Shown here: in pieces, positions 27,007 to 38,012 of the stretch
Layout of the letters: every line of letters begins with the position of its first letter
How positions within the stretch are numbered: position 1 is the first letter of the stretch
From: Thecamonas trahens ATCC 50062
Lineage: Eukaryota > Protista > Apusomonadida
Length of the DNA stretch: 64,000 nt
NCBI RefSeq assembly: GCF_000142905.1
Contig: NW_013657639.1
Span: forward strand, 222,559 to 286,558
Direction: 5' to 3'
Position numbers and translations under genes: made by a program
Notes under the pieces: generated by a model
Told to the model about the DNA's origin: nothing
What the model saw: the letters and a program-made list of their open reading frames with translations, nothing else
The model's database searches: none

Positions 27007-27392
27007 TGGAAGGGAAAGTTGGTGGTACGGGCCGGGCAGGAGGGAAGGGGGGGGGGGGGGGGGGGGGGGGGAGGGAGGTGTGGTGGGACAGCGGACGGGG
27101 GAAGGTATGGGTATATGGACATAGACATACACTCACACATAGAATGAGGTCACATGGGATGCGGAATGGTTATGGGTGGGGGTGGGGGGGATGGTGTGGG
27201 GGTGTGGCGTCTGTGTATGTGCCTGTCTGTTTGGACGGGGCGTGTGTGTGGGGGGCGTGTGGGGGGTTGGGCGGCGTGGGGCGACGCCGGTCACGGGGGG
27301 CATGGGCATGATGATACTTCTGCTGCTCCCGGTCCTGCTACTGGTGCTTGGGCGTCTTACCCTCTTCTTTCGTGCCCTCGTCCATACTCTGC

Positions 27393-30300
27393 ATGTCTGG
27401 CGACACCACAGGTGCGGTGGCCACCACGCCTGAACATGTGGCCACTCTTGCCCAGGCCGCACGAGTCATCCTTCCCTATCAACAGCAACAGTATACCTCA
27501 AGTCAAGAGGCGGCAAACCAGACGGAGCTGGCCTCGTCACTAAGCGGTGATGTTGGCTCAGGCTCGGGTCACTGGGACTCGCTGCGGTTCAACTCGGCAC
27601 GGTACGGGTGTGACGGGCTTAACGGCGTCGTTGGCCGCGCGGAGATTGAGCTCTCCTTTACAGACTTTGTCGAGACGTTTGAGCCGGTGCTTGCGCCGGC
27701 ATCGCCCGGCAGTGAACCGAGCGCTATGACGGTCGAGCTTGTCTCGCTGCGGGTCCTCCACTCGCTGCGGCAGCGCGAGCTCGCGACCAGCTCGCCGTGT
27801 TCAGAGGCAGACGACAGCGTCCGCCACGATCTGGGGGCCATGGACGTCCTGGCTCTGCCGGCGAGTGTTGTGGCACGCATTGCGTCGCTTCTTCCGATCG
27901 AGGACCTGCTCACGGCCGGTGATGTGTGTCTTGCGTGGCGCGAGCGGTTCCGGTCCAACGACATCTGGCGCCAGGCGTGCCGGCTGGCGTGGGGCCGACT
28001 TCCAGCATGCGCCGACAATAACGACGGCTCACTGGCTGCGGCCGCAGAAGCAAGTATTCGTGCGGCTGCCTCCCCGGTCGACGGCCTCATCCTTGCACTC
28101 GAGTACCCGGCGTCGGCTCCGCCCGACCCCGAGACGCTGTTGAGCGAACGAGACAGTCCTCAGCCGGTTCCGCGCGTTCTCGAACTTGTCTCTGGTGATG
28201 TCCTTGATCGACTCAACGCCTATCTTCGCAAGCCGCAGCCGTCGCTGCTGGTCAAGCTACTGGCAACATACGCTGACGACGGCCAGCCCCAGGTGGCATC
28301 GGCGGCGATGACGTACGTTCTGCAGCAACTCAAGTTCCGAGCGTTCAAGTCTGCGGTCATGTCGTTTCTCCTCGACGACCTCACACCAACCCAGATTGGG
28401 TGGTGCGAGGCGTTCACCCAAGCGCGAACCGCCGGTGTCGCCGCCGCGCAGTGGGAGGCCGACGCGCTCCTGCCGGTCTTTGAGACTGCACGGGCGGCGC
28501 TCAAGGCGTCCGAGGCTTCGGCGCCTGCGCTCCGCGCCCAGGTCGAAGCCCTTGTCGTGCCGCAGCATCGGGCGCTTGGACAAGTCCTTGTTCACCGCAT
28601 CTCCGGCGTCCTGCCCTCGCTCTTTGCCTCGGTCGACCTCGACAGCGAGACCTCGCCGCTATTTGCGGCGCTCCACGGCGCGCTCGCGTCGCACCTCGCT
28701 GCCGCCGCTGCCCAGCATGTTCCACTCGTCGACGTCACGCCGTTTAACGTCGACCGAGTTCTCACCGACCTCGTCGACTCGGGTCTCACCTCAGGCCAAT
28801 TCTTTTCCACGCCGGTCGAGGTTCAATACGTGGCCCACCTCGTCATTGTGCACTTTCGTTTCGCGTCGGCTAAACGGCCGTCGCGGGTCACCTCGCTTCT
28901 CACCTTCAAGTCGAGCTCAAACACAGGCTCGGGCTCACTGGCGATGGCGGCAGCGGCTGCAGCTGCGGCGGCGAACGGCGAGGCGACGCTCACCCGCTCG
29001 CTGTCGTCATCGATCTCACACACGACAAGCTGGAAGCCGACGCCGTCTCTAGACGTCATTGTGGGTGCGGTGCCAGACACTCTGCTCAACACCTTTGTCT
29101 GTGCGCTGCTGCAGATCCCGCTGCTTCGCGGCGAGTTTGTGAGGCGGCTCTCTGACGGGCGACGGGCGCTGGCCATCAACGCCATTCTCGCGGTTCTGGC
29201 CGCGCGGACCAAGGCCGGGGCGTCATCGTTGCGGGCGGTGCTCCTCCGGGGCTACTTTGCGCAGCTAAGTCTCGACCCGGCCAACGACCCTCGCGAGACA
29301 AACCTCGTCGAGCTCATTGATGCCATCCTGCAGGCTATCGAGGCGGGCGCTCCAAGAGGCTCGACGCTCATGGCCGACATTGCCGCCGGCTTTACAGCGC
29401 TCGGTGCGTACTGGACCGGACCGCGGCTCAAGACCCTCTTCCAAGAGGTTGAGCGGGCAACAACGACGTTTGTCTCGGACTTTGTTCCCTCGTTTGTCTC
29501 GATGTGGCACACTATCCAAGACTTTCAACTCACCGACGAGGTCCAGCACGGCCTCTTGGAGCGCGACGGCGGCCTGTTTGGCTCGCTCACGGCCGAGGAG
29601 CGCCCGCTCCGTGAAGTGCTCGAGAGCCTGCTGGCCCTCCGGCTCCTGCTCTCGGCGGCGGTCATCGAGACCCACCGCAAGTCAGGCCTCCTCATGCACG
29701 CCTTTTCATATGCCAACCGCATCAAGCAGCTCTGTGGGTTTGGCCTCCTCCTCTCGACAGTGGCCTCACTCGGCATCGAGGCCGACGACGACGATAGCGA
29801 GTGCTTTGGCGACGCCAACCTGCTCAACCTTTTCTTTGACGTTGTGCAGAACCCGTCGGTTCTTCGCGACCCCGACGAGCTCGATGTCGCCTTTGTCTAC
29901 CACGAGGCCGCCGCCTCGCTCGCCCGGCTGACAGAGCGGCAGGAAGCGCGCCTGGCGCAGGTCGTCAGCAGCGCCGAGGTTTCCGGTCCTGAGCTCAGCG
30001 AGCTTGTCCTCGCGTTTGAAGCCGACTCGGAGCAAGTGCTCGGGCTGAAGGAAGCGCTCGGAGTGGTGGTGTCGAATCCCGAACTGGCGCAGGGCCCGCT
30101 GGAGGAACTTGGCGTTGACACAGGCGTTGTCCACAAGCGAGTTGTCGAGTGTGCGGTCCAGCTCGAGACAATGCGGGTCCAGGCGGAGAGCATCCAGGCG
30201 CGGCTGGTTGATGGCCTCCTGGCGTCGGCGCTGGTCGAGCTGGCGGGGCTCGGCCCGCTTGACCGTCAAGTCCGCGATTCGCTGGCAAGCGCGTCGATGG

Positions 30301-33300
30301 TCGCCGGCGAGGCAGAGGCGCTCAAGACGCTTGGTGAGTTTGTGCGATTTGCCGAGGTCTCTGCGCTCGGCTTGCTCCCTTTCCACTTGCTGGATCAGTG
30401 GCAGCAAACTGTGCGGCTGGCAGCGGCGGCGTACGCTGCGGTGGCAGCAATGGCCCTGGCGGACCATACTCTCGCGCTTCCGTTTCTCGCCTTCCGGTTC
30501 TGGATTCGCGGGGGGAGTAAGTGCGAGCTGGTCCTGGGCTCGCTGTCAGCCACCGTGCTGGAAAAGTGGCTCGAGGCGTACGAGGTGGGCCAGCTGGCGA
30601 GCTCCACGCGCGACGCGGTCGATAGTATCGTGACGGCCGAGGCCGAGCTCGGTGAGCTCAACACCCGGCTGGGCAATCTGCTCTCGCGGCGCTCCGATGT
30701 CAAGGGCTTTATGATGGCGTACGAGGGCTACGAGCTGGCGCATGCCCGTGAGCCCGAGCGGGCCGAGGCCAAGTTTGCAGCTCAGCGGGGCGCGGCGCTC
30801 GGCTTTGTGCAGAGCCTCGGTGGTGAGGGCGAAGGCGAGGCGGCGGTCCCGGTCTGGTCGCAGGCGGCCAAAACCCAGCTCGCGGCCAAGACAGCGGCGC
30901 TCCGCGAGACCAGCGTCGAGTGGGTCGAGTGCCGGGCCGGCGAGCTTGTGGCCCAGCGGGAGCGGTTCTTTAGCTTTCTCCGCGACGTTGTCTCGGTCCT
31001 TGACGATCTGCTGGCATGCGAGCGTGCACGAGTGCGGCGGATGCGAATGCTCTTGCTGGATTTGACGTTCATGGAAGCGCGGGCGAATGGCATGCTTGAC
31101 GCGCTGCCGCACCGATTGGCGGTGTGCAAGTCTGGGCTCTCGGTGGCCACGTTTAGCAATGAGAGCACAGCGGCGAGTGAGCTGCTTGACCCTGCGTGGC
31201 CGCTAGTCTCGAGTGAGCTCGGGCTTTCTGCACAGGCACCGCTTGTGGTGGAGCTCGAGCTAGTGACTGTGGACGACATGTGGTCGCGAGCGATGGGCGA
31301 ACTTGCACGGCTCTCTGCCGAGATGGGCTCGTCGTGGCTAGGCAAGCTGGTCTCGGAGCTCGGTTCGCCGGTGAGCGTTTGGAACAGAGACGGGCGAGCC
31401 GGCCTCCTGGCGGCGATCCGCAAGCTTGACGCAGCAGCCAATCGAGCGCCCAAGGCGCGGCGGACCCTGACGCAGCTAGCCGGGGAGTACCTTGCCGTGG
31501 AGCGGCAACTTCCCGCCGAGGCCGAGCCAGCAAGCCTGGCGCTGAGCCGAAGCGTGATGGTGACGAGCGAGCTCGGAGTGCGGCAGCTGTCGATCGAGCA
31601 GGCAACGGCGGTGTTTCACTCGTTCCCGCTGGCCGACGACATCCGCCGAGTCGAGCCTGTCCATCACGGGCTACGGTACAGACCATCGCGGGCGCCGATG
31701 GCGCAGATGGCGGTCCAGCACCTGGGACGGCTGTTGTTTGGCGCCTCATCGCCGGTGGCATGGTCGACCGAGGTCTCGATCAGGACGGTTGGCAGCGATG
31801 AGGCGCGGGTCGAATCGCTCTGCGGCAAGCAGCTTGTGAGCCGCGTGGCCGGCATCGATCTGGCGCGCGCATTGCGATGGTACCCGCAGCTTGTAGATGC
31901 GATTGATATTGGGTCGTTCTCGCGAGCGTTTGTGATGTGTGTGCTGGCTGTACCCGACTCGCTGGCTGCCGGCCTCGTCTCGCTCCAGCTGTGCATGAGC
32001 GATGGCAAGCTGACGGCGTTTGTGGCGATTGACGATGCGCAGAGTGGCTTTTCCGGGCGCGGTGGGGTGCGACTGCGGTCGATCCTGCTCTGCATGCCGC
32101 AAATGCTTGCGGCGTTTGAGGCAACGACACGCGAGGTAGTGCTCGCGATCGAACCTGCGCTCTTTGTCCTTGAGTGGCTCGGGTTGGTGACCGGGGCCGC
32201 GGCGAGGGTCTCGAGCACGTTGTGGGGCAAGCATAGTGCGCGGATGGTGTACTCTCGGCTAGTGGCGCTGCAGAGAGTGCTACAGGACGAAGAGTCGGCC
32301 TCCCACCTCGCTCTCCTCAACGCTGTCTCGCCGACCGTGGGCGCGCTGTACTCGGCAGCAATCGAGTCAGAGGAGTACACGTCCGGGTTCTCGGCGTCGC
32401 TGCCGGAAGCGCTGTACCGGCGGTCGCGGTACTGGCCGTGGAGCGAGGGCGGTAAGGAGACGAGCAAGTATGAGCGTTTTACAATGGCGCGCGCGATTGA
32501 GGACTTGCTGCCGGTGGTGGACCTGAAGCTGCTGCGTCAGAGCGACGAAGAGCTTCTGCTCGATGCAGCACTCCGGGTGCCAGGCCTGACCAAGCTGACG
32601 CTTGTCGACCCAGGTGTGCCGCTGGGTAAGCTCGTGGAGGCTGTGGCATGGGCGCCGGAGCTGATGTGTGTGCGGTTGGTGCAGAGCACTGGGCAGGCGC
32701 CGCTGAAGTCACTGACGACTGAAGGGCTGATGGCACTTGGTACGGCGGTGTCGCAGCTCGAGCTTGGCCTCCTTCCTGGGGTGGAAGTCGCAGATTGGCG
32801 GCGGCTGATCACGTCCGGAGTGGCGCTTACAATTGTACTTGGGGCCGAGGGCGACGGGTTCCGGATGTGTGGGTCGCCGCCAGAGGAGCTTGAGCTTTGG
32901 CGCGAGCTTGTGGGCGTGCAGATGTGGCTGCTGGAGCAGGGCAGTGATGCCGGGCTTGTGCAGGTTGTGCGCTCTGTGGCACAAAGTGTGGCAACCAAGC
33001 CTGGGGCGCTGGCTACATTTCTGGCGCTGGAGGTCTCGCACGGACGGTCTGTTTTTGACTTTGCGGTGTACGAGAAGCGGAGCGGGGCTGTGCGGCGGCT
33101 GCTGGAGTTCTCGCCATCGTTGACCTCGTACGACACGTTTGGCTACACGCCGCTGCATCGGGCGGCTGCGATGTGTGCGCCCGACCTTGTTCAGATGCTG
33201 CTGGAGGCGTACGCGGCGCGGTGTGGCAGCCACGTGAGCCGGCTGGAGTCACACTTTGCGTACGTGGGGCTCGCGAGTGGGGCGTCGGGAAAGCGGACGG

Positions 33301-36300
33301 CACTGCACTATGCTTGCGAGAGCAAGTCGCACGAGTGCGTGCAGCTTCTGCTGTCGGGTGTGGGCGCCGTCTCGCGCCGCGAGATTGTCCGCGGGGTCGG
33401 AGCCAATGGCGAGGATCTGAATCGCGTGGTGTACGGGTCCGGAGAGGACGACGAGATTGTAATTGCTGCGGAGCGGCAGGCGCAGCTGGAACTGCTTGCG
33501 CGGCCGGAGCTTGACGACCACAAGACGCCGCTGCACATTTGCGCACGGCAGGGCGATGCGCGGACGGTGCGGCTACTGCTGGAAGCTGGGGCGCCTGTGA
33601 ACGCGCTCACCGAGGTGTGGGGCTACTCAGCGCTGCACTTTGCAACGAAGAACGGGTTTGCGGAAACGGTTGTGCTCCTTGTGCAGTACGGGGCCAAGGT
33701 GTTTGTGAAGAATGCCAACGGCGACACGCCTGTGGACCTTGCGTTCCGGCATGGGCGGTACAAGATCATGCAGCTGTTCATTGATCCGCAGCTCCTTGTA
33801 CGGTACGTCGAGTCGCCGCAGCTGCTCGAAGAAGATGCAAGCAAGGGTGTGGAGGGGTACTACTCTGACGCGGTGGCTGGGAGCCGGCGGTCGGAGGTTG
33901 TGCTTGGGCTGGACTACATGGCGGACGCGCGGCTGTCTGCGGCGTACGCCAGTCACGCGGCACAGTATACCGACGGGGCGAACCGGGTGGTGGATGTTGC
34001 GCCGTATGTTGAGGCGGCGATGCTGTACAACGCGGCGGTGGAGGTGCTGCACGGAACGAGCGAGGTGTGCGACGGGCTGGATGCCGAGGCCTTTGAGTCA
34101 TACCTGGTCAAGAAGATGGAGCGCGTGGAGGGCTTTTTTGTTAGCGACGAGCTGGGCACGATGCTCACGGAAGAGACCGTGGCTTTCACCGCCAAGTTCC
34201 GAGAGCGGTTTGCGCAGCTGCGCGAGGCGCAAGTGGCGGCGAGCGCGTCCGGGATGGTGAGCGTGCAGGCCGGCGAGCGGCAGATGGGGCTTTTGCGGGA
34301 GATGTGGGAGCACGCCGTGCTCTCTGTCTCTGCTGTGGTGGAGGTGCCTGCGCTTGCGGTGCTTGTGATGCGGAGCGGTGAGGCACTTGTGCACGAGCCT
34401 GTTGAGGTTGTTGTTGCTGTCGAGAGCAATTCACCGGGGGCGAAACGGTTTGTGTACAACATGCTCTCGCTGTTTGCGGTGAAGCTGGCGAACCTCGGCG
34501 AGCTCCGGGGTGGGCTCCGTACGGATGGTAGCGTTTCGGTGCACTGTGCCGAGTCTGGACTCCGGCTCAAGCTTGCCTATGACACGACGGTGGTGCGATC
34601 GCCTGCGGTGGTTGCCAAGCTCCTCGCGACGCGGCGCTGCGGGTATGATGTGCTGTGGGAGACGCCCGGATCGCGTGTGACTGCGGCGCTGTCTGGCGCG
34701 CTCAAGAAGCTGCGCGGCGAGAAGATCGGTGGCGGGCTGTTTTCTCGTGTGTATGCGCGACATGCGCAAGGAAGCACGATTGTGGCGAACGCGGTGTTCG
34801 GGTTTGCGGTTCAGTTTGAGGACGGAATGCTGTTTGCAGGCCGGCAAGCGCAGATTGACCTCGGGCGCGAGATGATGTGCGTAGTGCGCGAGTGCGTGTA
34901 CGGCATGTGTGTGTACTACGGAGTGGGCAACGACAGGGCATTTGGGATGGAGGCATTGGTCCGGAAGCGGGTTGTGCCCGAGAGCGTGGGCGCCGAGGTG
35001 ACAAGTCTACTGCATGCACTCGGGCTGCAGCGCAACTTGGCGCGCCAGGTTTACAGGGCGAGCGACGACCGGGCTTTTGTGGCCGAATTTGTGCAGGGCG
35101 AAGAGAGCAAGATGTACACGATGGCCGGCTCGACGCTGGACGAGATGCTTGCGACGGTGCTTGCGTTTGTGGCGTGCGCCAAGCTCTGGGTTGTGGTACC
35201 CGTGAAGGAGAAACTGGACGTTTGGTCGCACTACCGCACGTCTGGCTACCGCGGCGTACCCGACCGGGTGCGGCTCGAGCGGCTGGGCCTGTGCGCGCGG
35301 GCGGGCGGGGGCGACGCGAGCGTGCCAGTGGTGAGCACAACGCGGCCGCGGGCCAACTCGGTGTTTGAGTCGCTCAACTCTGCCGAGGTGCGTGCAGCAA
35401 GCGCTGCACTCGGGCTGAGCAGTGGTACTGGTGACGAGGTGTCGCTCCCATCGCTGGTGCCGGGGGTGTGGATGAGTGGCGCAAGCTCGCCGTGGGAGGG
35501 GCGCGAGGCGTCATATCCGTCGCTCGCGCCGGCAGTGTGGATGAGCGGAGCGAGCTCGCCGTGGGATGCCAACAACGTGAACGAGGCCGACTTTGACGCC
35601 GAAATCGAGGGCGTGCTCGACTTTGCACGAGCTGCGGGCGAACGAATGGAGAGCTCGATGGCGTGGTGGGACGAGGGATGCGTGCTGCACTTTGCGGGGC
35701 GGGCAGCACTGCGGATCGGGCTTTTAGAGCGTGGACGCGAGCTTCTGGAGCGATCGCGGGACGGCACGTCGCGGTGGCTCAAGGATTCGCCGCGTGTGCT
35801 GCTGGACAAGCTGTGGATTGGCCATGCTGCGGCGTGCTGCGGCGACTACGAGGCTGCGCTGAGCGAGCTTGTGGGCTTTGAGCAGCTCTCAGAGCGGCTG
35901 GACATGGAGCTGCCGTGCCACCGTACGATTTCGAGCGGGTGGCGTGGGATTGTGGCGATGGAGGCTGAGCTTTCGGCGGCAGCCGAGAGTGCCAGCGTGG
36001 CGCTGCTTCCGCCAGAGGCGTGGGCTGCGGTGATCGACGTTGTGGAGGCGCTAGTGACGCTGAGCATGCACACTGTGGCGTGGGTGCGAGATGCATTTGT
36101 GCGCGGGTCAGTCCGTGTGGACGCGCTGGAGCCTGTTCGGGATGCGGCACGCGGACACGCCAACGGAGAGGCGCGGGAGCTGCTTCTGCAGTTTGCACTG
36201 TTGGCAAGCGAGGTGCTCGGCGAGGCGCGGCCTGCCGAGGCGCTCCTGCTGTGCGCTGTGCTTGAGCTCGATTTGCGGTCGCGTGCGACGCTCGAGGCGC

Positions 36301-37478
36301 GCGCGCTTGTGCTGCGGGTGGAGATCCTGCTGCGCGGACTGGAGCCGGTGGCACTCTCAGTGGCGGCACAGCGCAAGTCGCGCTCAGCAGGAATGGGCAC
36401 GCGGCTGCTCTCGCTGGTGGCGGCGCTCATTGGCGAGGTGGACGCAGCAGAGGACGCGAGCCGGAGCGAGGAGAGCGTGAACGCGAATGCGAATGCGAGC
36501 ACGACCGAGGCTGCGGAAAAGCGCGAGCGAGCGAGTGCAGAGCGTGCCGGAGCGCTTGACGAAATTGTGCGCTCTGAGGAGGTGTACCGCGACGCGATGG
36601 TGTCGATGGAGGATGAAGTTGCGATCCCGCTGCGCGAGGCCGGAGTTGTGAGCGAGGCGGAGTGGCGGGTGTTGTTCTCGCACCTAGGGCCCGTGCGGCG
36701 TGTGGCATGTGAGTTTATGAGCCGGCTCACCGAGGCAATGAGCAGCGAGGGCGATGCAGGCGCGGCTGTGGCGCAGGTATTCCTGGACATGATTGGATAC
36801 CTCTCTGTGTTTTCACCGTACGTCAACGCGCTCGGCGAGGCGCAGGCGATGCTTGCGCAGCTGTCGTCGCGTGAGGCGTTTGTGGCGTGGCGACAGAGTG
36901 TGGGCGCGAGCATGCCACGCGGGCAGGGCCCGTTTTCTGGGCTGGAAAAGCCATTCCAGCGGATGCTCAAGTACCCGCTGCTTCTCGCGCGGGTGCAGAA
37001 GAACACGGATGAGGAGCACGAGTCGTACGCTGTGATTGCCGAGGCAGCGAGTGCGGTGCAGGCCAAGGCCAACGACATCAACGAGAAGAAGCGGCAGGCG
37101 GAGCAGCGGGCGCGGCTGCTAGAGATCTCGCAGCAGACGTGGATCAACGACAAGCGAGCTGTGGAGCTTGTTGTGCCCTCACGCCGTGTTGTGGAAGAGG
37201 GAAAGGGCGTGCTGGTCTGGGGCGGAGTCGAAGAAGCTGTTGAGTGGGTGGCATGCAACGACGTGGTGTTCTTTGTCCGGGGAGGAGGGGCGGTGAAGCA
37301 GCGGCGGCGGGTTTTGGCTGTCCTGGAATGGAAGGACGTACGCGTGGAGGAAGTGTATGGATGGCCCGAAGTTGAGCTGGAAGACGTGGTGCGTGATGTT
37401 GTGTACGCGATTGGGTTTGATGGAGAGGAGGAGTGTGAGCGGTTTGTTGCGAGCGCGAGCGCAAGCGAGCGAGCGTAA
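27393..37478 (+). CDS. Giant multidomain protein: F-box, kinase-like module (degenerate), ankyrin repeats, DUF294-like NTase/helical module (degenerate), RhoGEF DH-PH
   Basis: F-box LALPASVVARIASLLPIEDLLTAGDVCLAWR (~27840); ankyrins GYTPLHRAA, KTPLHICA, GYSALHFA, GDTPVDLA (~33040-33790); DH EIVRSEEVYR...KPFQRMLKYPLLL...INEKKR (~36540-37110); PH-like C-terminus. Confidence 0.85.
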   Translation: MSGDTTGAVATTPEHVATLAQAARVILPYQQQQYTSSQEAANQTELASSLSGDVGSGSGHWDSLRFNSARYGCDGLNGVVGRAEIELSFTDFVETFEPVLAPASPGSEPSAMTVELVSLRVLHSLRQRELATSSPCSEADDSVRHDLGAMDVLALPASVVARIASLLPIEDLLTAGDVCLAWRERFRSNDIWRQACRLAWGRLPACADNNDGSLAAAAEASIRAAASPVDGLILALEYPASAPPDPETLLSERDSPQPVPRVLELVSGDVLDRLNAYLRKPQPSLLVKLLATYADDGQPQVASAAMTYVLQQLKFRAFKSAVMSFLLDDLTPTQIGWCEAFTQARTAGVAAAQWEADALLPVFETARAALKASEASAPALRAQVEALVVPQHRALGQVLVHRISGVLPSLFASVDLDSETSPLFAALHGALASHLAAAAAQHVPLVDVTPFNVDRVLTDLVDSGLTSGQFFSTPVEVQYVAHLVIVHFRFASAKRPSRVTSLLTFKSSSNTGSGSLAMAAAAAAAAANGEATLTRSLSSSISHTTSWKPTPSLDVIVGAVPDTLLNTFVCALLQIPLLRGEFVRRLSDGRRALAINAILAVLAARTKAGASSLRAVLLRGYFAQLSLDPANDPRETNLVELIDAILQAIEAGAPRGSTLMADIAAGFTALGAYWTGPRLKTLFQEVERATTTFVSDFVPSFVSMWHTIQDFQLTDEVQHGLLERDGGLFGSLTAEERPLREVLESLLALRLLLSAAVIETHRKSGLLMHAFSYANRIKQLCGFGLLLSTVASLGIEADDDDSECFGDANLLNLFFDVVQNPSVLRDPDELDVAFVYHEAAASLARLTERQEARLAQVVSSAEVSGPELSELVLAFEADSEQVLGLKEALGVVVSNPELAQGPLEELGVDTGVVHKRVVECAVQLETMRVQAESIQARLVDGLLASALVELAGLGPLDRQVRDSLASASMVAGEAEALKTLGEFVRFAEVSALGLLPFHLLDQWQQTVRLAAAAYAAVAAMALADHTLALPFLAFRFWIRGGSKCELVLGSLSATVLEKWLEAYEVGQLASSTRDAVDSIVTAEAELGELNTRLGNLLSRRSDVKGFMMAYEGYELAHAREPERAEAKFAAQRGAALGFVQSLGGEGEGEAAVPVWSQAAKTQLAAKTAALRETSVEWVECRAGELVAQRERFFSFLRDVVSVLDDLLACERARVRRMRMLLLDLTFMEARANGMLDALPHRLAVCKSGLSVATFSNESTAASELLDPAWPLVSSELGLSAQAPLVVELELVTVDDMWSRAMGELARLSAEMGSSWLGKLVSELGSPVSVWNRDGRAGLLAAIRKLDAAANRAPKARRTLTQLAGEYLAVERQLPAEAEPASLALSRSVMVTSELGVRQLSIEQATAVFHSFPLADDIRRVEPVHHGLRYRPSRAPMAQMAVQHLGRLLFGASSPVAWSTEVSIRTVGSDEARVESLCGKQLVSRVAGIDLARALRWYPQLVDAIDIGSFSRAFVMCVLAVPDSLAAGLVSLQLCMSDGKLTAFVAIDDAQSGFSGRGGVRLRSILLCMPQMLAAFEATTREVVLAIEPALFVLEWLGLVTGAAARVSSTLWGKHSARMVYSRLVALQRVLQDEESASHLALLNAVSPTVGALYSAAIESEEYTSGFSASLPEALYRRSRYWPWSEGGKETSKYERFTMARAIEDLLPVVDLKLLRQSDEELLLDAALRVPGLTKLTLVDPGVPLGKLVEAVAWAPELMCVRLVQSTGQAPLKSLTTEGLMALGTAVSQLELGLLPGVEVADWRRLITSGVALTIVLGAEGDGFRMCGSPPEELELWRELVGVQMWLLEQGSDAGLVQVVRSVAQSVATKPGALATFLALEVSHGRSVFDFAVYEKRSGAVRRLLEFSPSLTSYDTFGYTPLHRAAAMCAPDLVQMLLEAYAARCGSHVSRLESHFAYVGLASGASGKRTALHYACESKSHECVQLLLSGVGAVSRREIVRGVGANGEDLNRVVYGSGEDDEIVIAAERQAQLELLARPELDDHKTPLHICARQGDARTVRLLLEAGAPVNALTEVWGYSALHFATKNGFAETVVLLVQYGAKVFVKNANGDTPVDLAFRHGRYKIMQLFIDPQLLVRYVESPQLLEEDASKGVEGYYSDAVAGSRRSEVVLGLDYMADARLSAAYASHAAQYTDGANRVVDVAPYVEAAMLYNAAVEVLHGTSEVCDGLDAEAFESYLVKKMERVEGFFVSDELGTMLTEETVAFTAKFRERFAQLREAQVAASASGMVSVQAGERQMGLLREMWEHAVLSVSAVVEVPALAVLVMRSGEALVHEPVEVVVAVESNSPGAKRFVYNMLSLFAVKLANLGELRGGLRTDGSVSVHCAESGLRLKLAYDTTVVRSPAVVAKLLATRRCGYDVLWETPGSRVTAALSGALKKLRGEKIGGGLFSRVYARHAQGSTIVANAVFGFAVQFEDGMLFAGRQAQIDLGREMMCVVRECVYGMCVYYGVGNDRAFGMEALVRKRVVPESVGAEVTSLLHALGLQRNLARQVYRASDDRAFVAEFVQGEESKMYTMAGSTLDEMLATVLAFVACAKLWVVVPVKEKLDVWSHYRTSGYRGVPDRVRLERLGLCARAGGGDASVPVVSTTRPRANSVFESLNSAEVRAASAALGLSSGTGDEVSLPSLVPGVWMSGASSPWEGREASYPSLAPAVWMSGASSPWDANNVNEADFDAEIEGVLDFARAAGERMESSMAWWDEGCVLHFAGRAALRIGLLERGRELLERSRDGTSRWLKDSPRVLLDKLWIGHAAACCGDYEAALSELVGFEQLSERLDMELPCHRTISSGWRGIVAMEAELSAAAESASVALLPPEAWAAVIDVVEALVTLSMHTVAWVRDAFVRGSVRVDALEPVRDAARGHANGEARELLLQFALLASEVLGEARPAEALLLCAVLELDLRSRATLEARALVLRVEILLRGLEPVALSVAAQRKSRSAGMGTRLLSLVAALIGEVDAAEDASRSEESVNANANASTTEAAEKRERASAERAGALDEIVRSEEVYRDAMVSMEDEVAIPLREAGVVSEAEWRVLFSHLGPVRRVACEFMSRLTEAMSSEGDAGAAVAQVFLDMIGYLSVFSPYVNALGEAQAMLAQLSSREAFVAWRQSVGASMPRGQGPFSGLEKPFQRMLKYPLLLARVQKNTDEEHESYAVIAEAASAVQAKANDINEKKRQAEQRARLLEISQQTWINDKRAVELVVPSRRVVEEGKGVLVWGGVEEAVEWVACNDVVFFVRGGGAVKQRRRVLAVLEWKDVRVEEVYGWPEVELEDVVRDVVYAIGFDGEEECERFVASASASERA

Positions 37479-37485
37479 GTGAGCC

Positions 37486-37822
37486 AGCGAGCGGAAGCGA
37501 GCGCGAGCGAGCGGAAGCGAGCGCGAGCGAGCGGAAGCGAGCGCGAGCGAGCGGAAGCGAGCGCGAGCGAGCGGAAGCGAGCGCGAGCGAGCGGAAGCGA
37601 GCGCGAGCGAGCGGAAGCGAGCGCGAGCGAGCGGAAGCGAGCGCGAGCGAGCGGAAGCGAGCGCGAGCGAGCGGAAGCGAGCGCGAGCGAGCGGAAGCGA
37701 GCGCGAGCGAGCGGAAGCGAGCGCGAGCGAGCAGAAGCGCAAGAGCTTGGGCGAGCGGAAGCGCAAGAGCTTGGGCGAGCGGAAGCGCAAGAGCTTGGGC
37801 GAGCGGAAGCGCAAGAGCTTGG
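37486..37822. repeat. Composite minisatellite: 20-bp (GCGCGAGCGAGCGGAAGCGA) x~12 followed by 24-bp (GAGCGGAAGCGCAAGAGCTTGGGC) x~4
   Basis: Near-perfect tandem units visible immediately after the stop codon of the giant gene. Confidence 0.95.
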
Positions 37823-38012
37823 ACACGCGAGCGAGCATGAGCAATCGCGACCGCGCAAACGGGTGCAATCGTGACCGCCCATCCATGAGCAATCACAACT
37901 GAGAGCGCAAGTGTTATCAAGCGTCAGCGCAGAGTCTGTCCGCTAAGCGTCTGCAAAGCGCACCCTAGACCCCCTACGACTCCTCTTTTTCCCGTCTCCA
38001 TCACCAACCATG

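Follow-up and report, generated by a model that had tools for sequence, protein, structure and literature searches.

A 10-kb gene on the forward strand of a 64-kb stretch of Thecamonas trahens ATCC 50062 DNA (27393..37478; the whole stretch is hereafter called the window) encodes a giant protein that is probably a scaffold-type guanine nucleotide exchange factor for Rho-family GTPases (RhoGEF) with two dead enzyme modules, inherited from a native nucleotidyltransferase (NTase)-kinase family. Its core, which runs from a helical region through a kinase-like module and ankyrin repeats to a DUF294-like NTase module, would derive from this T. trahens family, and both enzyme modules seem to have lost catalytic residues and kept structural ones. 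An F-box precedes this core and a DH domain follows it. Judged from its sequence, the architecture is new and the component domains are of known kinds.

The kinase-like module spans residues ~1395-1700 (31575..32492, + strand) and is predicted to be a pseudokinase with a fold of the PI4KII/actin-fragmin-kinase type. Searched as a separate piece, it matched nothing in Pfam (E <= 10), PDB sequences or NCBIfam, and nothing usable was returned by the ESM Atlas. When residues 716-1915 were used as a phmmer query against 1.84 billion representatives, residues 1429-1672 matched P0010 (E 1.3e-5), a Logan-contig protein of 1226 aa that has LRR and SH3 domains, and P0012 (E 1.3e-4), a 1294-aa protein of the testate amoeba Pyxidicula operculata that has a PH domain at its N-terminus. 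Pairwise BLASTP of the kinase-like piece against the same two proteins gave E values of 6e-22 and 7e-19, respectively. PF27087, which is listed for P0010, was considered as the kinase module and rejected, being an LRR family. P0010 and P0012 carry D-A-K-P-[ED]-N and I/V-D-N-D stretches, suggestive of a kinase catalytic loop and of an equivalent of DFG. A family hidden Markov model (HMM) made without the giant protein nevertheless gives that protein 45.5 bits (E 3e-12 at Z = 10,000), and we therefore regard its membership of this family by descent as firm. No Pfam model matched any of the 37 family members, even at E <= 10, no NCBIfam model matched the four bacterial members and the giant's module, and the family profile found no kinase among PDB sequences. 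On its motifs, this is a strongly conserved kinase-like domain family that nevertheless lies outside Pfam and NCBIfam and has no family name.

What fold does the module adopt? An AlphaFold model built from a 7-row alignment was discarded (predicted local distance difference test, pLDDT, 46), whereas with a 37-row alignment the model of residues 1390-1720 reached a pLDDT of 72.3 and a predicted template modelling score (pTM) of 0.74. In a Foldseek search of the PDB with this model, type II phosphatidylinositol 4-kinases account for the 11 top-ranked hits (E 4e-4 to 4e-3, probability 1.0, TM 0.44-0.50) and ordinary protein kinases trail weakly behind. By VIA-align the best match is PI4KIIalpha (Z 16.4, 242 aligned residues, root-mean-square deviation 4.9), followed by CotH (Z 10.5), actin-fragmin kinase 1cja (10.5), CtkA (10.3), PI3Kalpha (10.0), Fam20 (9.9) and Legionella MavQ (8.0); an equal structural neighbourhood is reported for PI4KIIalpha itself in the paper describing its structure (PMC3974213). 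An earlier, preliminary description of this DNA had proposed, from sequence motifs, an atypical PI4K/actin-fragmin-like kinase fold for this segment. The proposal was borne out, both by the kinase fold match that AlphaFold and Foldseek returned and by the VIA-align ranking, with PI4KII first and actin-fragmin kinase in the next group.

In the AlphaFold model the loop motif follows an alphaE-like helix and the IDND motif follows a beta hairpin, which would be the positions expected of a kinase catalytic loop and of the metal-binding Asp. The same arrangement holds for the intact family members, where a D-x-K-x-D-N loop comes after the alphaE-like helix and I-D-N-D after the hairpin; the latter presumably resembles the I-D-N-G motif of PI4KII, a resemblance that we use as a lead only. 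The predicted fold is thus the one seen in type II PI4K (4pla/4hnd, Z 16.4 over 232-242 residues) and is shared with the atypical kinases of the actin-fragmin kinase, CtkA, CotH and Fam20 group (Z ~10 to 1cja, 3akj and 5jda). However, identity between type II PI4K and the kinase-like family is 11-13%, no Pfam model, PI3_PI4_kinase included, matched any of the 37 members, the family profile matched no solved PI4KII sequence, and the giant's copy, unlike PI4KII, is without catalytic residues.

This loss emerged from a check of alignment columns with no or almost no variation among the other 36 family sequences. In the giant's module, 6 of the 8 invariant polar residues checked are replaced. The beta3 Lys (35/35) reads H1409 and the alphaC Glu (34/35) reads Q1438; in the loop, the Asp, Lys and Asn (36/36 each) read S1523, A1525 and L1528. 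The first Asp of IDND is kept as D1547, the Asn and second Asp of the same motif read D1548 and A1549, and a further invariant Lys reads R1562. An acidic residue, D1522, adjoins the position of the catalytic Asp. Structural residues are retained (e.g., W1595, P1647, Y1653 and R1695-F1696). In the family tree, the giant's branch has a length of 2.8-3.1 changes per site, the median being 0.3-0.4. On these residues, the module looks like a pseudokinase.

The second enzyme module, a DUF294/DUF294_C-like NTase at residues ~2295-2594 (34275..35174, +), is a probable assignment from profile searches and is predicted to be inactive. We built an alignment, termed A4, from the NTase modules of the T. 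trahens open reading frames (ORFs) with Pfam DUF294 hits and from that of P0017, a 1942-aa protein that carries the kinase-like module and to which Pfam adds DUF294 and SidM_N. SidM/DrrA has an N-terminal AMPylase that is a recognised relative of DUF294 NTases. By hhalign, residues 2296-2372 of the giant protein aligned to the GS..DxD..helix core of A4 (P 0.0023). The A4 HMM scores the NTase-like piece at 11.2 bits, a value reached by 0 of 2000 shuffles (maximum 6.6), and among 81 ORF windows of the window the two over this segment come out on top (11.2 and 8.4 bits, the next one 0.4). A deeper, 12-row profile gave 17.8 bits on the cut piece, again reached by 0 of 2000 shuffles (maximum 8.9), with two collinear matches: residues 2295-2372 to the NTase core and residues 2485-2594 to the DUF294_C-like helical part. 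Consistent with this, a phmmer search with the whole giant protein against a small set of paralogue ORFs aligned residues 2313-2526 to the DUF294 + DUF294_C region of the Pkinase-DUF294 paralogue (E 0.0015). The look-alikes listed by the ESM Atlas all carry DUF294, DUF294_C or GlnD families; their best score, 0.85, serves as a lead only. BLASTP of the piece against the DUF294 region of P0017 gave no signal, and a search of PDB sequences gave no match. With support of moderate strength, the segment is probably homologous to the DUF294 NTases.

The likeness to DUF294/DUF294_C proteins (GlnD/GlnE-type NTases) thus consists of collinear matches to both the core and the helical part of profiles of T. 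trahens and bacterial modules. Where DUF294 proper has its G-S and D-x-D signature, the giant's segment, which is below Pfam detection, reads L2324-V2325 and P2336-x-E2338, so that only E2338 is still acidic. Because the signature is lost, the module is predicted to be dead, if it has the NTase fold at all.

Alternatively, both modules could still be enzymes with a non-canonical chemistry, the kinase-like fold binding nucleotide in an unusual manner like SelO or SidJ, and the giant protein an active modifier of Rho-pathway or SCF substrates. The retained D1547, the acidic D1522 next to the catalytic position, the conserved structural core and the fact that the module is kept in frame within a 10-kb gene would all fit such an activity. 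However, the replaced positions include the beta3 Lys, the alphaC Glu and the Asp, Lys and Asn of the loop, the branch leading to the giant's copy is very long, and the NTase-like module has lost its G-S and first Asp too. We consider residual enzymatic activity of this kind unlikely.

Where do the two modules come from? A family profile search of the T. trahens genome found the kinase-like module at at least ten loci, paralogues that a single-sequence search of the same genome had missed. Pfam gives at least six DUF294 hits in T. trahens, five of them over the cut-off, in ORFs of 1384-2176 aa that combine DUF294 with Pkinase, DEP, TPR, LRR or WD40. When ORFs were scanned with both profiles, the two modules were found together at at least seven loci. 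The NTase comes first and the kinase-like module second in one frame on contigs C3, C6, C12, C24 and C32, and in adjacent frames on C45; on C5 the order is kinase-like module, ankyrin repeats and NTase-like module, as in the giant. The C45 ORFs, one with the NTase and one with a partial kinase-like module, lie ~1.2 kb apart on the same strand (L077:3895-5115 (-) and L077:6336-9998 (-)) and could represent either a decayed copy or a single intron-containing gene. Four T. trahens copies of the kinase-like module have intact or near-intact motifs (NPEDGKxDN and IDNDH in C3, C6 and C12; VDNEY in C24), and five, the giant's included, are eroded. The four copies with (near-)intact motifs are in giant ORFs of 1805-2546 aa (L071:920-8557 (+), L072:1943-7357 (-), L059:305-6832 (-) and L060:3318-9701 (+)). 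Upstream, each of the four shows an NTase-like match (a weak one in the C3 ORF); downstream, LRR and/or WD40 repeats were found in three.

The C5 paralogue (G000:C5 ~71.5-82 kb, minus strand) resembles the giant most in its layout, with a helical region, a degenerate kinase-like module, ankyrin repeats and an NTase-like module in the giant's order. The helical N-terminal region of the giant protein (residues 560-953; 29070..30251, +) is common to this paralogue, with 31% identity over 415 aligned positions (E 9e-36). Neither an F-box nor a DH domain was detected in it. The paralogue is split into two ORFs that overlap by ~200 nt (L075:1269-10000 (-) and L078:3-4619 (-)), whether through a frameshift, through an intron or through faulty assembly, and borders at its 5' end on an assembly gap, written as a run of N. 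The helical region is also partly common to another T. trahens protein, AMSG_02852: residues 726-958 (29568-30266) match AMSG_02852 (P0008, 1238 aa, E 2.8e-8) and an unnamed metagenome protein of 1194 aa (P0009), and both of these are without any Pfam domain.

With at least ten native loci, four intact copies and a paralogue of the same core order, the giant thus looks like a diverged representative of a family native to T. trahens and is not clearly a domesticated effector. Searches of large protein collections able to show the full F-box-to-DH architecture did not find it elsewhere, and among other protists the kinase-like module turned up in Pyxidicula operculata (Amoebozoa). The exact combination, described at the outset as unrecognised, is therefore unmatched, whereas its core is one of at least ten related loci and has a counterpart of the same order on C5.

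The kinase-like module is also widespread in bacteria. Searches onward from P0010 found it in Sel1/LRR proteins in bacterial contexts, and P0016, a 2127-aa protein of a proteobacterial metagenome-assembled genome (MAG) encoded between murG/ftsW and secretin genes, combines it with Ras and ankyrin repeats. A pattern scan with a 3-row alignment, covering one genome per bacterial species, found 39 kinase-like loci, including seven copies in one gammaproteobacterial chromosome. Taxa with the module are Candidatus Paracaedibacter symbiosus, other Paracaedibacteraceae, Holosporales, Chlamydiae, Dependentiae and several alphaproteobacterial MAGs. The lineages found are known to associate intracellularly with protists. 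A scan of viral contigs gave no relative of the module. The bacterial host frames measure ~700-2400 aa, two short fragments excepted, and the stretches P-E-D-G-K-P-D-N and I-D-N-D-H-A-F occur in nearly all loci, a conservation that is partly ascertained since the loci were searched for by these very motifs. Next to the module lie ankyrin, LRR and Sel1 repeats. Most of the bacterial proteins carry tandem kinase-like modules, with a divergent first copy ~300-550 residues upstream of the canonical one (L016-L054, e.g., L017:1-6114 and L035:652-5706), and in L003, L028, L029 and L030 a DUF294-like NTase takes the place of the upstream copy. In L052, the NTase is in the ORF just upstream of a fragment of the kinase-like module. 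Locus L004:5001-11384 (GCA_021781965.1) encodes a 2127-aa protein that has a Ras/Roc GTPase domain at its N-terminus, ankyrin repeats at its C-terminus and two kinase-like modules, with a third match that is weak and partial; its gene is bordered upstream by a CTP-transferase-like gene, beyond which lie ftsW and murG, and on the other side by hemE.

A published family adds to this bacterial picture. The amoeba symbiont Neochlamydia has a 50-member family of F-box + DUF294 + TPR proteins, NEX2 (Domman et al. 2014, PMC4209131), which share with the giant an N-terminal F-box, a DUF294 in mid-protein, a large repeat protein and an amoeba-linked lifestyle. NEX2 proteins are bacterial and have C-terminal TPRs, with no kinase-like module or DH domain reported (PMC4209131), whereas the giant is eukaryotic and three times larger. 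The statement in the preliminary description that both modules occur beside ANK/TPR repeats in proteins of amoeba-associated bacteria was accurate, given the ANK, LRR and Sel1 neighbours of the kinase-like module and the DUF294 + TPR proteins of this symbiont.

Such a distribution could mean that an intracellular bacterium was the source of the two modules and that these now form an integrated decoy or sensor wired to Rho and ubiquitination, that is, a domesticated bacterial effector. Giant proteins with ANK, LRR, Sel1 or Ras domains do carry the modules in Paracaedibacter, Chlamydiae, Dependentiae, Holosporales and gammaproteobacterial MAGs, and a single genome often has several copies; NEX2 offers a bacterial protein with F-box and DUF294; and both of the giant's modules are catalytically eroded, as integrated decoys often are. 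However, of the at least ten kinase-like loci in T. trahens, several have DUF294, four are intact, and they are joined to the eukaryotic domains Pkinase, DEP and WD40, and the partner domains of the bacterial proteins are themselves eukaryote-like. The phylogeny of the kinase-like module, an unrooted tree, points the same way. A single clade (SH-aLRT, the Shimodaira-Hasegawa-like approximate likelihood ratio test, 92-96) holds the 34 main bacterial copies, and six T. trahens copies are placed beside it. The giant groups, on its long branch, with Pyxidicula, P0010, the T. trahens C5 and C1 copies and the first module of a bacterial protein (SH-aLRT 94-96), apart from the main bacterial clade.

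Given the lack of a root and the length of the giant's branch, the trees do not fix the direction of transfer between protists and bacteria, on which we can only infer. The bacterial clade looks derived, the modules were most likely exchanged between protists and their bacteria, and the tree fits a eukaryotic family borrowed by bacteria better than a recent effector capture by T. trahens. The suggestion of a domesticated effector or decoy was thus left unsupported, as T. trahens has several native copies of the modules, intact ones among them, and we think capture from a bacterium improbable. In a wider form of this idea, the DUF294 NTase and PI4KII-like kinase would make up an undescribed two-enzyme signalling cassette traded between protists and intracellular bacteria, of which the giant is an integrated dead copy, a bait or sensor that couples the detection of bacterial effectors, or of what these target, to the Rho cytoskeleton and SCF ubiquitination. 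We give this version equally little credence; if true, it would give protists a counterpart to the decoys integrated into plant NLRs.

The divergent member of the native family is encoded by a single open frame (27348-37478, +; first ATG at 27393; 3361 codons including a retained 96-nt intron). At the GC content of the window (~64%), ~0.027 stops are expected per random codon, that is, ~90 over 3361 codons where none is seen; the stop-free run is so far beyond chance expectation that the ORF is not a chance product. A search of a 5.8-billion-protein collection assigned the ORF to T. trahens ATCC 50062, an apusomonad flagellate, for which GenBank lists two products of the gene. XP_013755333.1, "ankyrin" (3329 aa), is the ORF minus an in-frame annotated intron 1 (27412..27507, +, GT..AG, 96 nt), across which the ORF is open. 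XP_013755334.1, "ankyrin, variant" (3068 aa), also lacks an alternative intron (36567..36745, +, GT..AG, 179 nt), whose removal causes a frameshift so that the variant protein stops just where the DH domain begins. As annotated, this splice variant would encode a GEF-less form. Both isoforms are labelled for ankyrin only, and the other modules are unnamed in GenBank. The ~10-kb intronless ORF first described is therefore one frame of 3361 codons, whereas in the GenBank models it is not intronless.

Could neighbouring F-box, core and RhoGEF genes simply share a frame, or be expressed as separate transcripts from internal promoters? The C5 paralogue, with a core and no detectable F-box or DH, would be expected under such a composite or mis-joined model, and so would a GenBank variant that stops before the DH domain. 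Nevertheless, the frame is free of stops throughout, the full-length XP_013755333.1 model covers everything, and a Dbl RhoGEF with ANK repeats, which may or may not be the giant, has been published for T. trahens (PMC5499878). We regard a composite model as very improbable.

Around the gene, a GC-rich minisatellite (37465-37822; a 20-nt unit in 13.9 copies, then a 24-nt unit in 4) begins within the last four codons of the giant ORF, crosses the stop codon and extends between convergent genes. A 29-G run (92% pure) lies at 27047-27075, ~320 nt 5' of the start codon. An antisense ORF of 678 aa (35846-37882, -) covers the 3' end of the gene, and many further ORFs of 160-270 aa overlap it in other frames on both strands; like these, the antisense ORF is most likely a by-product of high GC.

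The domains that flank or separate the two enzyme modules are more readily recognised. An F-box-like domain at residues 153-197 (27849..27983, +) matches PF12937 above the Pfam cut-off when searched as a cut piece (30.1 bits vs 24.3), and ankyrin repeats at residues 1916-2131 (33138..33785, +) match PF12796 (E 9.8e-26) and PF00023 (4 stretches). Both the N-terminal F-box and the central ankyrin repeats (Pfam E 1e-25) had been named from the sequence alone and are confirmed here. LRRs are a possibility at residues ~1720-1900. The linker region gave no Pfam match (E <= 10, cut piece) and no PDB sequence match.

The DH/RhoGEF domain lies at residues 3055-3230 (36555..37082, +) and is found by PF00621 with 76 bits against a cut-off of 27.6 (E 5.5e-21). 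In a PDB search its sequence matches DH structures from P-Rex1/2, ARHGEF4, NET1, Vav and intersectin (down to E 4.9e-13); CR1- and CR3-like motifs are present and the domain looks intact. The segment in PH position, the C-terminal ~110 residues (37140..37475, +), is a putative PH domain, plausible only from its position behind the DH and its DH-PH-like strand pattern. A survey of Dbl RhoGEFs counts 24 in T. trahens, ANK-containing ones included (Fort and Blangy 2017, PMC5499878). The giant's DH resembles these in being well above the Pfam threshold, and the giant may or may not be the surveyed ANK-RhoGEF. For the T. trahens members, the text of the survey makes no mention of an F-box or of a kinase-like or NTase-like module.

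Several points weigh against the giant protein being a scaffold-type RhoGEF with two dead enzyme modules. The NTase-like segment has no Pfam match even at E <= 10 and no homologue in a word-indexed search of a 5.8-billion-protein collection, and the profile score is only 11.2 bits (E 0.076 at Z = 10,000) when all 3361 residues are searched. The DUF294/DUF294_C claim of the preliminary description is supported by the profiles with moderate strength only, and not by Pfam. Residues 3231-3361, behind the DH domain, have no Pfam match (E <= 10, cut piece) and no PDB sequence match; accordingly, of the DH-PH tandem described earlier, the DH is recognised and the PH is not. Residue loss in a kinase fold is not proof of inactivity, as the non-canonical chemistry of SelO and SidJ illustrates. 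Finally, that this is one real T. trahens gene with a single transcript is read from the continuous ORF and the GenBank models only.

What, then, might a RhoGEF do with two dead enzymes? In the scaffold that we favour, the dead modules would serve as binding or (auto)regulatory domains and would gate or localise the C-terminal DH domain, which is predicted to activate Rho-family GTPases. Through the N-terminal F-box, the partners of the dead modules, or the assembly itself, may be linked to an SCF ubiquitin ligase, and the splice variant would offer a form without GEF activity.

The giant gene itself is a lineage-specific oddity, and the kinase family and its pairing with DUF294 are the wider result. 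A family of PI4KII/actin-fragmin-kinase fold, not covered by Pfam and NCBIfam, is repeatedly paired with DUF294 in giant repeat proteins. This NTase-kinase pair spans a free-living protist, the apusomonad T. trahens, and many lineages of protist-dwelling bacteria, often in several copies per genome, and the kinase-like module occurs in an arcellinid amoeba as well. The pair is thus a concrete candidate for new host-manipulation or signalling enzymes, and the four T. trahens ORFs with intact motifs are good candidates for testing its function. Within this one genome, the series from intact to eroded copies would provide a natural system in which to trace the recruitment of pseudoenzymes into Rho and ubiquitin signalling.

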